Positions 32,618 to 39,584 are shown, counted from the first letter of the stretch. The stretch is DNA of 64,000 bases from Oikopleura dioica (GCA_907165135.1 OU015566.1:2666001-2730000), one strand, 5' to 3'. Numbers and translations: made by a program. The notes: generated from the letters alone by a model not told the origin.

Positions 32618-33942
32618 TTGACAAAATAGCGCAGATAGAGAGAGTAAACGAAGAAATAAACGAAATTTCGACGTCAGCGAAAAAGTGCACGCCTTTGAAA
32701 AGTTATGTTTTCCTGAAAAAACACAAATGCGCTTCGAGTTCATTCCAGGGAGGATTTTAGAGCTGATCGAAAGCAAAGATTTTTAGCGGAAAAAATCCCC
32801 GAAAAGACGATTTTCAAACGATACGGCGATGAAAATGGAATCGGCGCCGCAATCCCCTACTACGGCTCTTACGGCGGCGGATATCCAGCCCGTTTTCAAC
32901 CTCAATTTTTCAAACCTCCGATTATTTTCACCAACCAATCTATCCGATGCCACCATCGATTCAATCCTGATATCGAGCCTGGGCTTTTTCCCGGGGCGAA
33001 ATTCTTCACTTCTATAAGAGAGCCATTCGAAGCCTTCAAGAGCAATTTTAACTACCACTACGGAAGATTTTTCAAGTAAAATTGCTTCCGTTATTTGTAA
33101 AGAAATTTTTCAGCGAGAAAAATTTGGAGCGACGGGAGCGCTGGTGCACTGTTGGCTGCTGGGGCGAGCCGTTTCGCTCGATCGTCGGTAAATTGAACGT
33201 TTCAGCGGCTGAATACCTCGATGTCGTTGAGAAGAAAGGACTGCCAGCTGACGAGAAGACTCCTTGGTTATTTCGAGCGAAGAATTTTCAAGGCTTCGAG
33301 CTCGGAATGGATCACAACAACTTCGACATCAAATACATTTATGATGAGATTCTGAGACTCGATGACATTTTCGACCTCGTCATGGTTCAAGAGTATTTCT
33401 TCGAATCCCTTGTTCTTCTTGCTGAAGAACTTTGCACAAGTTTCAAAACACTGTATGCTTCGACAGATAGGATGGTCTCAATGCCAAGATTGAAGGAAAA
33501 GAACTCGAATGCGAAATTCACGGACCAACAAATGAAAACCTTTCGAAAAGACAATATCCAAGATTATGCTATTTATGAATTTTTCAATAAAACTCTTTGG
33601 GAGAAGATCGACAGATATGGACATGAAAGAATGAAAAAAGATGTCGAGAAACTGAAAATGATCTACAAAGGTAACCGCTTATTTCATTTTTATGAATTTT
33701 TCATCGTTCAAGAATGCGATGAGGATGAATCATTGTGTGGAATAGAAAAAAGACGCGAGCCAAGTGGAAAAGCCGAATTCGACCCTGGAACAAAGAAAGA
33801 ACTGCTTCAGCTAATGGCGGAGAATGGTGGAGCTTGCGCGACGGGGGTCTTCCCTAAATTACGAGCGGGGAACCAACAGGCTGCGACTATGTGGACAGAG
33901 AGCTCACATGATTCCCGAGAAGCACGAAAGAAAATTGTATAG
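32618..33942 (+). CDS. Galactose-3-O-sulfotransferase-like protein (start further upstream, unresolved)
   Basis: CTPLKSYVFLKKHKCASSSFQ|TIFKRYG (PAPS loop, cf. FLKTHKTASST), FFTSIREPF, NFQGFELG, LDDIFDLVMVQEYFFESLVLLAEELC. Confidence 0.85.
32749..32806 (+). other. GG-AG intron with terminal stem GGATTTT/AAAATCC
   Basis: Gives SSSFQTIFKRYG, matching the Gal3ST STxQNILxRFG pattern; uses purine-rich CCGAAAAG and skips a conventional ATTTTTAG at 32786. Confidence 0.75.
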
Positions 33943-33983
33943 TTCTGTATCTACTGATATTTATTCAATAAAAGTCATCAAGT

Positions 33984-36900
33984 TCAAAGAGAAAAAGCAG
34001 CTAAGAGCCCCTGGAATCCAGCATTATAGTCGATTGCCACCTCATTCGCGACATAATCCGATCGATCATTGACGAAAACATCAGTCAGTGTTCTTGGGCC
34101 TCCACAGAGAGCTCCATAGAGAGTCCAGTGATTTGGACCGGAAGAGTGGAAGTTATTCCAGCCACAAGCATTGGGGTAAGGAGGACAGCTTGAAGCGGTA
34201 TGGTGGGGTGAGTGGGGCGATTTCGGACCATGACCGACGACGAGAGAGGCTTGGATTCCGTCGATCACCGGATGTCCGTTTGGTCCGTTTCCAAGAACGT
34301 AATCAAGCTGGCTCTTTGCGAAGGTTCCGTATTGAGCAGAAAGACCAAGATCGGAAGCCACCTGAAAGAATTAACAAAATTGGCATCATGGAAGACTCAC
34401 CTTGAGAATGAAGCCTGCATTGCACGCATGTCTCGCAGATCCCCATTCTTGAATATGCACAAGACCTCCTGGAGTTGAGGGTCTGTTTTGTAGGGCATTG
34501 TAGAATTGTTGGATCTTGGCTGAATAAGTGCTTGCATCAGAATCGCCAGCAAGAGTCAGGACATCGTACATCATGACATTTGCGCCCTCTCCCTTGTTGT
34601 CCCATGAAAATTCACTTGCCGAACCTGGATTGAAGGAAGAAAAGAGAGATTTTGCCTGCGCAACGTCGGAGTTAAATGATGCACTATCGACAACGTAGCT
34701 CGCTCGGGCAATGGAAGCTCCAGCAAAAACGATTTCATCGTTGTATCCAGACCAGGAATCGTAAAATGGAGAGGCGCCGACAATGTTTTCGGAGTATTTG
34801 CCAAGATTGGTTGTTGCAAAATCAAGCAGCTCACGCGCCCTGCTGAGGAGATCCGCTGCATAAGCAGGATCAGAGTCGTAGAAAACTAGCGCAGCAGTGG
34901 AGAAAAGTGATGAAACTCCAGCGGCAAGGTCTGATCCAGGGTTTGAAGGGGTGATCTTCACAGCTGGTCGAACCATGTTCATTTCTTCAGGGCGATCCCA
35001 GAAAGCGTGGTCGAGATTGCCATCACCGACTTGAGCGTACAACTCGTTGGGCGCGATATGGCATCGGACAAAATAATCGACTCCCCATTTGAACACTCGG
35101 AGGGCATTTTCATACTCACCGGCGGCTTCATATCCGGCTTTGTATTGATGAAGACCCCATCCGAGAGTTTGCATGGCCATTGAAGCTGGGAAATGAAATT
35201 TGACGAAATCACCAGCGTCGTAAAATCCACCAGTAAGATCGACTCCGACATCGCAACCATCAGTGATAGTGGCGTCTCCTCGCCAAGGGACGCGATGCCA
35301 GGCGGGCAAGGGACCTGCCATTTGGGCTTCGTAGAAGAGGATGCTCTTCTCAAGAGCACCTTGATAGTCAAGCCAGCTTGTAGAGCCAACGGAAGTCTGA
35401 GCAGGACTTGGAGGAAGAACTCCCTGAGGGCCGTTGCAGTCTTGTGGACCAGTTGTGGTGGTGGTCGTTGTTGTTGTCGTTGGTGGACCTGTGTAAGGCG
35501 TTGTGGTGGTCGTTGTCGTTGTTGTAGTTGTTGTTGGCCCTTGGGTGGTAGTCGTCGTTGGTGGGAAGTTTCCATCAGGATAGACGCCGTCTGGCAGACA
35601 GACCTTTAGGCTGTTTGGTAGGAGTGCAGTTAGTGACGCCTCTGTTACGTAAGAAGAAGCAACTTGACCCTCGAAGACGAATTCGATCGGGTTGACGTTC
35701 CACTTGTTGTCGAAAAGCATATCCCAATTCAGCGCTTCTGACGCAGTTACAGGGTCTTTTATAGAGTTTCATTTAGGATCATTCGAAAATAAAAACTTGC
35801 GGTAAAACTCAGTCCTGGATTGTTTACGGTATTACCCCATGTTTCGATCGAATTCACGGGCCATTTGAAATTGACCTTCACCAAAAAGGTATCTGTCATG
35901 CCAGTAAGCGGGATATTCGGACGGGCTTGGAAGTGATAGTTTCCTGAGTTTTCCCAGAAATTCGTGATTTCCATCGAATATTGCTCCGAGGACAAAGAGA
36001 AACAGTTAAGATCGCCAGAAGTACTCGTTGTTGTAGTTGTTGATGGACCAGGGGTCGTTGTTGTCGTCGTAGTTGGACCAGCTGGTGTAGTGGTTTTTGT
36101 TGTCGATGTTGATGTTGGACCTGTCGTAGTCGTGGTTGAAGTTTGTGTTGTAGTTGTGGTCGTCGTAACCTATGAAAGGATATACTAAGTAAAAGAATAG
36201 CTACAAATTCTGCTGCCAAATCCTTTCCTGACTGGTGATATCGAGAATCCAGGGGACGATCGAAGACACTTTTGTGAACACTGATGGTCGATTTGGCCCG
36301 ACACATCCTAAAAATGATAAAGAAAAATCGCTGATCGATGATTCACCTGAAGTTCCCCAAGATAAAAGACCGGAGAGAACGGGTTTGCCGCCCATATCGC
36401 AAACAAGAGGGCTTCCAACATCACCATTGCAGATGTCCTTTGTTCCGTCAAACATTGAATCAGGAACACCAGCGCAGAACTCTGAGTTCTCATTTATATT
36501 TCCATACCCGAGCCCGGCGCAGTAGTTATTCGGAAAGTAGTTGACCGGAGAAGCATGAAGATTTTGAAGATTCTCAGATGCGGCTCTTATCGATCCCCAG
36601 CCGGAAACGTAGCACATAGCACCATCTTCCGGCATATCATTTGAGATGCAAGCTGGTTCGTAGACTGATTGACCCGATGTAGTGATTTTTCCAATATTGA
36701 TCAAGCAAGCATCATTTCCAGTCCACTCGCCAAATTTGAGGTAATCGTCATGGATGAAAATGTTGCTGCTGGTTATCGTGATTTCGCCGGCATCGTAGTT
36801 TTGAAGGTTGAAATCTCCAACTTTTGCGATGATCGTGTTCCTGTTATCACAGCATTGGGCAGAAGTGAGGACCCAATCAGGAGAATCAGCATTGTTTTTG

Positions 36901-37940
36901 CTGATAAGAGCACCTGAGCAGATGAATTCTCCGGTTGGGTCGAAGAGGGGTACTTGCCATCGATAGGTCTCTCTAGAAATAAGTCATCAAAAGTGATCTT
37001 TGTTGAAGTTTACCTAGGAGCTTCAGATCCTCCAAAAATCTTGGGCCCAGGTCTTCCCTTGACGGATCCATAGCCAGCGGGGTCTAGGGGATTGTGACAC
37101 GTCATCTGATTAGGCAAATGCGCTCCATTATCCTCCCACGTAGGGGGCGCGACGGGGGCATTCGTCGTTGTCGTCGTGAATGTTGTTGTCGTGGTCGATG
37201 TCGTTGTAGTTGTTGGCTGAGGAGCTTCATCCCAATCCGGCGTTTGAAGATATCGCTGATAAAGATAGCATTTTGAGTAGTCCGCTTCTTCGAAACCAAA
37301 ATCATCGTCAGCCATTGTGGCGATTCCCACATTCGAAAAACACTGGTAGTAGTCATCATGCACTACATTTGAATTTGGCGGATCAAGTGGATCGAAATCG
37401 GGGTCAACTCCGCTCATAGTGAAAAAGAATCGATCTTTTCCTTTTGTTAGGAAATCGCCTTCGAGGAATCGTGATCGTCGGAATTGAACAACTGCAGCTT
37501 CCTTGGTTTTGGATCCGTCGGCGGGGAGCTCGTAGTACTGTGCTTCGGTGAAGTAGTTATCATCGGTACGATCCCAGACATTGATGGTGATGGTTCCGTC
37601 GCCGATTGCACGGAGGATCGGCCGTTTACAGTAAGTTCTGTCGAATCTAAAGAGAAAGGAAAGAGGTAAAAAGAAGAGTCAAGAAAAACCTGAGCATGCC
37701 AACATATCCATCCTCTTTGTTCAAATACGGCAAGCCCCATTTCAATGCAACCATCTGCGCCGTGAAAGAAAATTCACTCTTCCCCATGTCTTTGTACATG
37801 ACATTATCTCCCCGCCCGAGCCAATCAAACGAACACGAATTTTTGCAAAGCATCGTCGACTCTGGTTTTGTTCCATCTTCGTAGCAAGAGCCCTTGTTCC
37901 AAGCCCTTGCGGATGCGAGAACGCAGCCTAATATCTTCAT
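33984..37940 (-). CDS. Secreted multidomain protein: N-terminal unknown domain, Thr linker, catalytically dead trypsin-like domain, Thr linker, CBM2-like module, Thr linker, GH9 endoglucanase
   Basis: Signal MKILGCVLASARA; trypsin motifs LTSAQCC / NDACLI / GDVGSP; Trp-rich MEITNFWENSG...IETWG; GH9 DLTGGFYDAGDFVKF, HHTASSC, NEVAIDYNAGF. Fusion depends on GA-AG introns 36170-36227 and 35756-35814. Confidence 0.75.
35756..35814 (-). other. GA-AG intron with terminal stem GAGTTT/AAACTC
   Basis: Phase-1 removal joins TVNNP to DPVTASEALNWDMLF (frame of ORF 34386-35720); acceptor TATAAAAG 8 nt after the stem. Confidence 0.7.
36170..36227 (-). other. GA-AG intron whose first 8 nt (GAAAGGAT) pair with ATCCTTTC just before ATAG
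   Basis: Phase-0 removal deletes the stop at 36201 and joins ILDITSQ to VTTTTT. Confidence 0.65.
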
Positions 37941-38184: not shown

Positions 38185-39584
38185 TTATATAAAATGCAGA
38201 TTTTCTCTTTCCTTCAGCCTCGTCGACCTATTATCGAACCACTGAAGCCATCTTTTCGGATGAGTCACTCTCCTCCGCGAAGTCTGCCGACAAAGTTGAT
38301 CTTGTCGAGAAATGATCGCCGTCAAAATCGACATGATTTTGGTCGATGTTGTCGCGGAATTGATCTGATTCAAGAAAAGTGGCGGAATGTCGCTGTTTTC
38401 AAGCGAGCTTCCTTGTGGGAGATAACAAGGACGAAGTTTTGATTTTCGATCTTGATCGGCAAAAACATGGGTGATCAGCTTGTTGAATTTTTCGATGATA
38501 CGGCTTAATACAGGTTGAGATCTTAATTTTTTTCTCTTCAACCTTTGAAGACTTTGATTTCCTCCAACTTGCTCTCTTCTTTTGATAAGCAATTCATATC
38601 TTCTCTTCACTGTTTCGATAAAACCGACCTTAACCCTTTGCTTTTTCTTCTTTTTCCGACTCTGTCTCTTTTTCCTTGTCGTTGTGGTTGTAGTTGTCGT
38701 TGTTGTTTTTATTTGCGATCTCCATTCAAGGTCGAAGCCATAGTGCTTCCCGGAATAGCCTTCGAAATAGACCCCTAAGTTGCCCGAATCGACATTTGTC
38801 CAATTCATGAATTCATTATCCGCTATTCGACGGTTCGAATATTTTCTAAAAATTCAAAAAAAAAAAATTTTCTGCGAAAAAAAATTCGAATTTGGGGACA
38901 TTTTTCTTAGGGAACCGTTTCTTGGCAAATCCAGCCAAGTTCTTTGTGTCCATCATAGAGCTGAATATTATCAAACAAGCAATTTTGAGTTACCTTGAGT
39001 TCCATCTTTTTGATCCGAAACTCGATCGGTTCTGGAGATGTGACAGTGTACATACATCCGAATCCAGCGGCGTAAGGGTGCTCTGATGAGATTTCACCGG
39101 AGGTACTTTAGAGGGTTAAACGCGTTAAACTGATCAGATGGCCGTTAGATTTTGTTTGGTCAATAAGAAAATTGCGTAAATGAAAAATTTGATTGATAAA
39201 AAATTATCCACCCAAGCGATTTTCCAAAAACGTTTTCAAATTTATTTGAAAAGCAAACATCAATATTTCTAACAAAAAAAAAGTTTTTTCATAAGTTTGT
39301 CGAAAAAATTATTTTAAAGTTCAACCTATCCTATCCCAATTACCACAATGCTGCATTGGGAGAACATCCGGTGCACTTTCGGCAGAATTATCAACTTGTT
39401 CGAATTGAATTCGTTTTATTTGCACTCAACACTGTCAAAAAATACCTTTATTAGCCAGGTCATAGATTTCCTGAAGAATTCGATCCGTTCCTGTATCTTT
39501 TGCCGCTGTCGACCCAGAACTAAAAGAGGGAATCGCTGCTGACACCCTTAGCAGTCCAAAAAGACAGAACCAATCGACTCTCAT
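38185..39584 (-). CDS. Secreted single-CUB protein with Thr linker, RKKR site and C-terminal helical domain
   Basis: Signal MRVDWFCLFGLLRVSA; exons read MQHCG, CTVTSPEPIEFRIKKMEL..NCLFDNIQLYDG..GWIC, VYFEGYSGKHYGFDLEW; ORF 38185-38808. Confidence 0.65.

Follow-up and report, generated by a model that had tools for sequence, protein, structure and literature searches.

A predicted Oikopleura dioica protein in which a GH9 cellulase domain is fused to a CBM2-like module and a catalytically dead trypsin fold

Organization of the locus

We analyzed a 64,000-nucleotide (nt) stretch of Oikopleura dioica DNA (GCA_907165135.1 OU015566.1:2666001-2730000), hereafter the window, in which positions are counted from the first letter. 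Its minus strand, which we read directly from 38100 to 33900, carries a seven-exon gene at 37940-33984 with a predicted protein of about 1,225-1,233 residues (Table 1). From the ATG at 37940 onwards, the gene encodes a predicted signal peptide, an N-terminal domain, a first, mucin-like Thr-rich linker, a trypsin-fold domain that has lost two catalytic residues, a second linker, a CBM2-like module, a third linker and a GH9 cellulase domain. This is probably one gene, the Okinawa-lineage ortholog of the previously catalogued GH9-13, encoding a single secreted modular protein that would act as outlined below.

Exons were translated and searched individually, and whole-domain analyses used natural ortholog sequences (P0122, P0271, P0276, L041 and L051). 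The lineages compared with the window were the Bergen locus (L041), the L042-L046 contigs (~95% protein identity) and a fourth lineage, L047 (ENA ERZ27250226 k141_52254), while scans of the species' own genome covered a 64,281,565-base, 19-contig O. dioica assembly. A first-pass annotation, made from the window sequence, had proposed a trypsin-like domain with two lost catalytic residues (TSAQC and GDVGS), a CBM-like module, a GH9 domain that keeps its DAGD aspartates and NEVAIDYNAG glutamate but has no signal peptide of its own, three Thr-rich linkers, and a 58-nt GA-AG intron that removes a stop codon. These domain calls, residue states, linkers and intron are all borne out by the analyses described below. 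It had also suggested that a transcript retaining this intron would give a short isoform limited to the pseudo-protease, and that the pseudo-protease could serve as a protein-binding adaptor of a cellulase acting on the house. The annotation had not covered the N-terminal domain of about 215 residues, the retained activation site of the trypsin fold or an arginine-to-threonine change in the GH9 domain, and the boundaries of the intron inside the module are ambiguous.

Table 1. Exons, introns and other elements of the fusion gene in the window (a slash marks the predicted cleavage site)
Feature	Coordinates	Strand	Description
Exon 1	37690..37940	-	ATG, short signal-peptide-like start MKILGCVLASARA; N-terminal domain begins
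Intron 1	37647..37689	-	43 nt, GT-AG; absent in the L047 lineage, which reads through
Exon 2	37014..37646	-	N-terminal domain to ~37226, Thr linker 1, Cys in MTCHNP, activation site GPK/IFGG
Intron 2	36973..37013	-	41 nt, GT-AG; absent in the L047 lineage, which reads ...SGAPRETYRWQ
Exon 3	36347..36972	-	Predicted catalytically dead trypsin-fold domain
Intron 3	36308..36346	-	39 nt, GT-AG, in frame, no stop; missing from L051, which reads SWGTSGCVGPNRPS
Exon 4	36228..36307	-	End of the trypsin fold, ...PWILDITSQ; Pfam Trypsin positions 201-220
Intron 4	36170..36227	-	58 nt, GA-AG; in-frame TAG 36203-36201; between the protease-like and cellulase parts
Exon 5	35797..36169	-	Thr linker 2 (36169-36017), then first half of the CBM2-like module from GDLNCF
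Intron 5	35756..35796	-	Inside the CBM2-like module; boundaries uncertain
Exon 6	34401..35755	-	Second half of the module to ~35589 (...KVCLPD), Thr linker 3, GH9 model positions 1-339
Intron 6	34362..34400	-	39 nt, GT-AG; absent in Bergen (contiguous tblastn matches)
Exon 7	33984..34361	-	C-terminal part of GH9, catalytic Glu, TGA stop 33986-33984
AATAAA polyadenylation-type signal	33960..33965	-	~20 nt past the stop

Trypsin-fold domain

Exon 3 matches the Pfam Trypsin model (PF00089) with an E-value of 7.7e-26 (36971-36348), and the last 20 model positions lie in exon 4. In alignments to activated protein C and trypsins, the catalytic His57 is replaced by Gln (TSAQC; codon 36857-36855) and Ser195 by Val (GDVGS; codon 36419-36417), and Asp102 (NDAC), the S1-pocket Asp189 and Asp194 are retained. 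With Gln, Asp and Val in the positions of the catalytic triad, the domain is therefore expected to be a non-peptidase homolog and not an active member of its family. The same residue states are found in the Bergen sequences (P0122 and P0271), in P0276/L047 and in L051.

The framework of the fold is preserved. By alignment, the cysteines of the pairs 42/58, 136/201, 168/182 and 191/220 are all retained, together with a Cys122 partner, and an upstream cysteine of the kind that ties the pro-piece to Cys122 is also kept. A zymogen-type activation site (GPK/IFGG) and Asp194 (within GDVGS) are conserved in four lineages. We thus predict a structurally intact but catalytically dead serine-protease homolog. 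It has no close paralog in its own genome, where the next best match shows 38% identity.

GH9 domain and CBM2-like module

The Pfam Glyco_hydro_9 model (PF00759) matches exon 6 over model positions 1-339 (E = 2.7e-89, 300.9 bits) and exon 7 over positions 343-444 (E = 3.7e-26, 92.9 bits). The own-genome scan returns a single GH9 match at the locus, with 400 bits over model positions 1-444. Both DAGD aspartates are present in the DAGDFVKF motif of exon 6 (Asp codons 35219-35217 and 35210-35208), and the catalytic-acid glutamate is found within NEVAIDYNAGFQ in exon 7 (NEVAIDYNAG; codon 34043-34041). When the GH9 domain of the Bergen ortholog is aligned to the termite enzyme 1KS8, DAGDFVKF pairs with DAGDFVKF and the NEVA.DYN region with NEVATDYNAGFQ. 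The phenylalanine after DAGD is common, occurring in 44 of the fetched GH9 domains and also in 1KS8. With this full catalytic set, the domain looks active.

Upstream of the third linker lies a module in which three tryptophans (in NFW, ETW and NKW) and a cysteine near each end are conserved. An hhalign comparison of the module alignment with an alignment of animal CBM2 domains gives a probability of 62.5% (E = 7e-5) and superimposes two of the three conserved tryptophans on conserved CBM2 tryptophan positions. In the protein atlas, the module lies closest to the CBM_2 cluster (0.88), with the COBRA, CBM49, GD_N and CBM_3 clusters next. The intron-less Bergen module was modeled with AlphaFold at a predicted local distance difference test (pLDDT) score of 84.5, and the best Foldseek match of this model is CBM2a of Cellulomonas fimi (6QFS; E = 9e-4, template modeling (TM) scores 0.50/0.59). 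VIA-align yields Z scores of 7.9, 7.5 and 7.2 to the CBM2 entries 2CWR, 6QFS and 3NDY, and of 6.3-6.9 to eight more CBM2 entries. A jackhmmer search started from a krill CBM2 domain reached the O. dioica protein GH9-14 and not this module. The profile and fold evidence is consistent and of moderate strength, and sharpens the first call of a CBM-like module to a putative divergent CBM2-like module of the cellulose-binding type. In its own genome, this module type occurs in one other gene only, which is GH9-3-like.

Linkage of the protease-like and cellulase parts

The protease-like and cellulase parts meet at intron 4, whose splice sites read tcAG/GAAagg ... catAG/gtt. GA-AG introns are the commonest non-canonical class in O. 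dioica, with the consensus AG/GAA (PMC7072748), and in the OKI2018_I69 genome 11% of introns are non-canonical and the median intron length is 49 nt (PMC8008620). Intron 4 agrees with this class in its AG/GAA 5′ context, its AG 3′ end and its short length. At this codon boundary, after ...ITSQ, the intron of the Bergen and L047 lineages is a canonical GT-AG one of 41 nt. A 6-nt insertion splits the ancestral GT in the window and in L042-46, where the intron reads CAG/GAAAGG...AG; its length is 58 nt, or 59 nt in L042, in which the poly-T differs by 1 nt (relative to L043). In every lineage compared, the exon that follows begins in the frame of the Thr linker.

A further sequence, L051 (JGI contig Ga0115100_10279771, 1,095 nt), was found with the Bergen protein and runs in one frame from K/IFGG to GDLNCF...WGNTV, spanning the dead trypsin domain, the junction ITSQ/GSTTTT, the linker and the module's first half. 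Relative to L047, its nearest genomic relative, precisely the two introns of this region are missing. L051 could represent either a spliced transcript or DNA from a lineage lacking those introns; its single frame in either case places the protease-like part and the module in one open reading frame (ORF).

For the window, the lineage alignment and L051 together lead us to infer strongly that the parts are joined by splicing of the 58-nt GA-AG intron, which removes the in-frame TAG. An alternative AT-AG variant (36221-36170) would also be in frame and would add two residues. We also considered a canonical GT-AG intron at 36232-36121 (112 nt, in frame) but rejected it, as the L043 lineage lacks its acceptor.

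The other introns vary as well. The intron-less ortholog P0276/L047 reads ...GQLRFDRTYCK across the exon 1/2 junction and so confirms it, and exon 4 is 100% identical in the L042-44 lineage. Introns 1 and 2 of the window are missing from L047, in which a further short intron interrupts the signal-peptide codons (L047:170-260), most plausibly with the ends GA...AG; introns have therefore been gained and lost between cryptic species within one gene. Bergen, in turn, lacks introns 5 and 6.

Three options for intron 5 all keep the frame: 35796-35756 (GT-AG, 41 nt), 35808-35756 (GT-AG, 53 nt) and 35814-35756 (GA-AG, 59 nt), the latter two ending exon 5 at 35809 or 35815. Only the donors at 35808 (GT) and 35814 (GA) are conserved in the L043 lineage; the GT at 35796, which is unconserved in this sister lineage, is probably not real. 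A reading collinear with the intron-less Bergen sequence would require a TT...AA intron in this region (35756-35815).

Conservation and selection

We compared the window with the L042-44 lineage (synonymous divergence, dS, of 0.5-0.9) and found ratios of nonsynonymous to synonymous divergence (dN/dS) of 0.04 in exon 1 and 0.03 in exon 2. The dead trypsin domain has a ratio of 0.033 (exon 3 range 0.03-0.12), with a value of 0 in exon 4. Linker 2, which directly follows the acceptor of intron 4, and linker 3 have ratios of 0.07 and 0.014, the two halves of the module 0.056 and 0.053, and the GH9 domain 0.016 (exon 6) and 0.023 (exon 7). Strong purifying selection therefore acts on every part of the protein, including the pseudo-protease, which is not a relic in decay.

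Conservation is highest, above that of the enzyme domains, in the N-terminal domain (37226-37928), which comprises about 215 residues with several cysteines and is 85-96% identical across four lineages (dN/dS 0.03). A Pfam search with this domain found nothing. Its AlphaFold model, built on a 7-row alignment, has a pLDDT of 29.8; the nearest protein-atlas match is VWD, which is weak (0.90-0.92), and the atlas structure matches all stay below a TM score of 0.35.

Orthologs and distribution

The gene model itself is not new. The Bergen ortholog is GSOIDG00016147001 (GenBank CBY23689.1, UniProt E4X1K8_OIKDI; P0271), a GenBank model since 2010 that is named "cellulase" and in which Pfam Trypsin (23-260) precedes GH9. 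In the glycoside hydrolase table of a 2026 single-cell preprint, it appears as GH9-13 (bioRxiv 10.64898/2026.03.31.715263). The first-pass view that this architecture is not known from described GH9 enzymes was therefore overstated, since the same fusion has been public since 2010 and is catalogued. In the preprint, only an expansin fusion is singled out and the protease-like part of GH9-13 goes unmentioned; the preprint describes the GH9 family as expanded in O. dioica, with some members expressed in the house-making epithelium (fields of Fol). We found no publication that names the gene identifiers or discusses the protease-like part.

A representative search with the dead trypsin exon returned close matches only to proteins of the O. 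dioica lineage (74% and 96% identity); beyond this lineage it matched only unrelated multi-trypsin proteins, at no more than 39% identity. Among the matches listed, no protein combining trypsin and GH9 turned up outside O. dioica, and PF00089 occurs in none of the best 120 GH9 proteins of 248-789 residues and in none of the best 120 of 879-2796 residues. The combination of pseudo-protease and cellulase thus appears to be undescribed in the literature we found and restricted to the O. dioica species complex.

Like the window gene, Bergen GH9-13 has a dead trypsin domain (SSAQC, GDVGS), the ITSQ/linker junction, the same module and a GH9 domain with DAGDF and HHT, with 74-82% identity per domain. 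The two differ in domain content: Bergen carries two near-identical tandem GH9 domains and an expansin-like C-terminal tail, whereas the window gene stops after one GH9 domain. In the Bergen genome, an uninterrupted ORF of 1,202 residues (L041:5018-8626; FN653021.1) encodes the module, linker, GH9, linker, GH9, linker and expansin-like tail. The junction intron likewise differs, being a GT-AG intron of 41 nt in Bergen and a GA-AG intron of 58 nt in the window. Domain content varies between cryptic O. dioica species. The Genoscope model of the Bergen ortholog starts at an internal methionine and omits the N-terminal 270 residues, although these are conserved in its upstream DNA; it also splices out the Thr linkers. 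Among ascidians, two Styela clava proteins (P0277 and P0278; 2,071 and 2,135 residues) have GH9 bit scores of 1283 and 918, which suggest several GH9 domains in each; multi-GH9 proteins may not be limited to larvaceans.

The surroundings of the gene differ between lineages, too. Downstream of the fusion gene, the plus strand of the window contains a galactose-3-O-sulfotransferase-like ORF (33085-33939; PF06990, E = 5.9e-18). It stands where the sister lineage has a different, convergent GH9 gene (38-42% identical) just downstream of the fusion ortholog (L043:3941-4333, L044:4025-4405). Upstream, the minus strand of the window holds a 207-residue ORF (38188-38808) that matches no Pfam model and in which a run of Thr precedes a stretch rich in Lys and Arg.

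Proposed function and alternative explanations

The feeding house of larvaceans, which has a cellulose scaffold, is built and discarded several times a day, and we know of no account of how its cellulose is trimmed and patterned. In the function that we propose, the CBM2-like module would hold the enzyme on beta-1,4-glucan (cellulose), and the GH9 domain would cut the glucan so held. The dead protease and the N-terminal domain would not cut protein but would form a binding or docking head for a protein partner. The conserved Lys/Ile site suggests that a live protease may switch this head on by cleavage, as happens with other protease homologs. As to where the protein acts, we lean slightly towards the animal's own cellulose, in the pre-house or house, because members of the GH9 family are expressed in the epithelium; food cellulose in the gut is a clearly less favored site.

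Several observations weigh against a single active enzyme of this kind. The arginine of the GH9 HHR motif is replaced by threonine (HHT, 34205-34197; Thr codon 34199-34197), as it is in both Bergen copies. For the module, the Pfam model PF00553 gave no match at E ≤ 1 for the exon pieces and none at E ≤ 0.1 for P0271, and all of its VIA-align Z scores to CBM2 entries are below 8. L051 does not include the GH9 part, so that the link between module and GH9 rests on the continuous ORF of exon 6, and it could derive from the genome of a lineage in which both introns were lost, though one ORF would be present even then. Use of the GA donor rather than the AT-AG variant is our inference, and no transcript of this lineage was seen. 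No hydrolase appears in the 2012 paper on the house proteome or in its supplements, and the accessible portion of the 2026 preprint does not state the expression of GH9-13 (bioRxiv 10.64898/2026.03.31.715263).

The most serious competing explanation is that the same fused protein is a gut enzyme that digests algal cellulose, its trypsin part being an exon-shuffled relic of a neighboring digestive protease gene. CBM2-GH9 enzymes are common in invertebrates, where they are typically digestive; moreover, the trypsin-type features Asp189 and the Lys/Ile activation site are kept, and the fusion protein does not appear in the house proteome list. A relic, however, would not be expected to combine a dN/dS of 0.03 with a full set of disulfide cysteines and an intact activation site. 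No other part of the protein is conserved as strongly as the N-terminal domain. In addition, several GH9 genes of O. dioica are expressed in the oikoplastic epithelium, according to the preprint. We therefore regard a digestive role as somewhat unlikely.

A more specific version of the proposed function draws on an analogy with HGF, and we offer it as a speculation that is itself unlikely to hold. The head would be a proteolytically switched docking unit that confines GH9 cutting in space and time: a live house or epithelial protease would cut at Lys/Ile, the new N-terminus would order the pseudo-active site, and the head would then bind a specific oikosin or another matrix protein. Cellulose cutting by the tethered GH9 domain would thereby be confined to house building, inflation or discard.

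The HHT motif raises the question of whether the GH9 domain cuts at all or, having lost the HHR arginine, is a non-cutting cellulose binder. The change is shared by the window and both Bergen copies. Both DAGD aspartates and the catalytic glutamate are nevertheless present, and the HHR arginine position is variable, the residue being absent in 36 of 211 fetched GH9 domains (17 with HHA, 10 with HHS, and others). HHT is thus better explained as substrate-site variation than as loss of function, and a non-cutting GH9 domain is very improbable.

A two-gene operon, in which the pseudo-protease would end at the TAG within intron 4 and a separate cellulase would be trans-spliced at the AG 36171-36170, is close to refuted. 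In its favor, the stop lies 31 nt ahead of a pyrimidine-rich tract and an AG, a spacing like that of the short operon spacers and trans-splice acceptors that are common in O. dioica. In the Thr-linker frame, however, a TAG immediately precedes the acceptor, and the first ATG follows only at 35974, 195 nt downstream. The cellulase part therefore has neither a start codon nor a signal peptide of its own, which would be odd for a separate protein rich in cysteines and Thr linkers. The methionine of this ATG is not conserved, being replaced by Thr-Ile in L047 and by Val in L051, and both the 51-codon linker and the module residues ahead of it have a dN/dS of 0.06-0.07. Direct reading of the sequence around intron 4 found no AATAAA and thus no polyadenylation signal at the junction. 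Finally, two lineages have a canonical intron at the same place, and L051 reads straight across it. That the donor change, a 6-nt insertion splitting the ancestral GT, broke the fusion and left the downstream part to decay is refuted by the selection data: the window and L042-46 share the GA donor, yet the downstream exons have dN/dS values of 0.01-0.07 and no frame breaks, so the change did not break the gene.

If the single modular protein that we favor is correct, a cellulase with a conserved protein-recognition head could connect the protein and polysaccharide parts of the house matrix. The locus also offers a clear case of a pseudo-protease under strong selection within a carbohydrate-active enzyme, and a clean natural example of a GT-AG intron turned into a GA-AG intron by a 6-nt insertion without loss of the gene.

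Comparison with known systems

The predicted cellulase half resembles the CBM2-GH9 endoglucanases of other animals (krill, Daphnia, abalone and sea star), in which a CBM2-type module at the N-terminus is connected through a linker to GH9. The GH9 motifs DAGD(F/H)VKF and NEVA.DYNAGFQ are common to both, and the catalytic domain is of the type found in termite NtEgl (PDB 1KS8). Unlike the window protein, none of the best 120 short and best 120 long GH9 proteins has a Trypsin domain, and the module of the window protein has diverged too far to be recognized by the Pfam CBM_2 model.

The protease-like half is comparable to the serine-protease homologs (SPHs) of the S1 fold, such as HGF/MSP, haptoglobin, azurocidin and the masquerade and clip-domain SPHs of arthropods, in which catalytic residues are replaced and which act by binding instead of cutting. 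They keep their disulfides, as does the window protein, and HGF also shares an activation site between a basic residue and Ile/Val. In these proteins, however, the dead domain is C-terminal and is combined with kringle, clip or CCP domains, whereas in the window protein it lies mid-protein, inside a carbohydrate-active enzyme.

Factor G of horseshoe crabs and the insect GNBP/betaGRP proteins also couple a glucan-recognizing part of the glycoside hydrolase type to a trypsin fold. The arrangement is opposite to that predicted here: in these immune sensors the glucanase-like part is dead, the protease is live and the two reside on separate chains.

A parallel in the species itself is the O. dioica GH9-expansin protein (GSOIDG00010457001), which, like other multidomain GH9 proteins of larvaceans and ascidians, has lineage-specific modules added to a secreted GH9 enzyme in an animal that makes cellulose. 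In GH9-expansin, the added module acts on carbohydrate; in the window protein, it has a protein-recognition fold.

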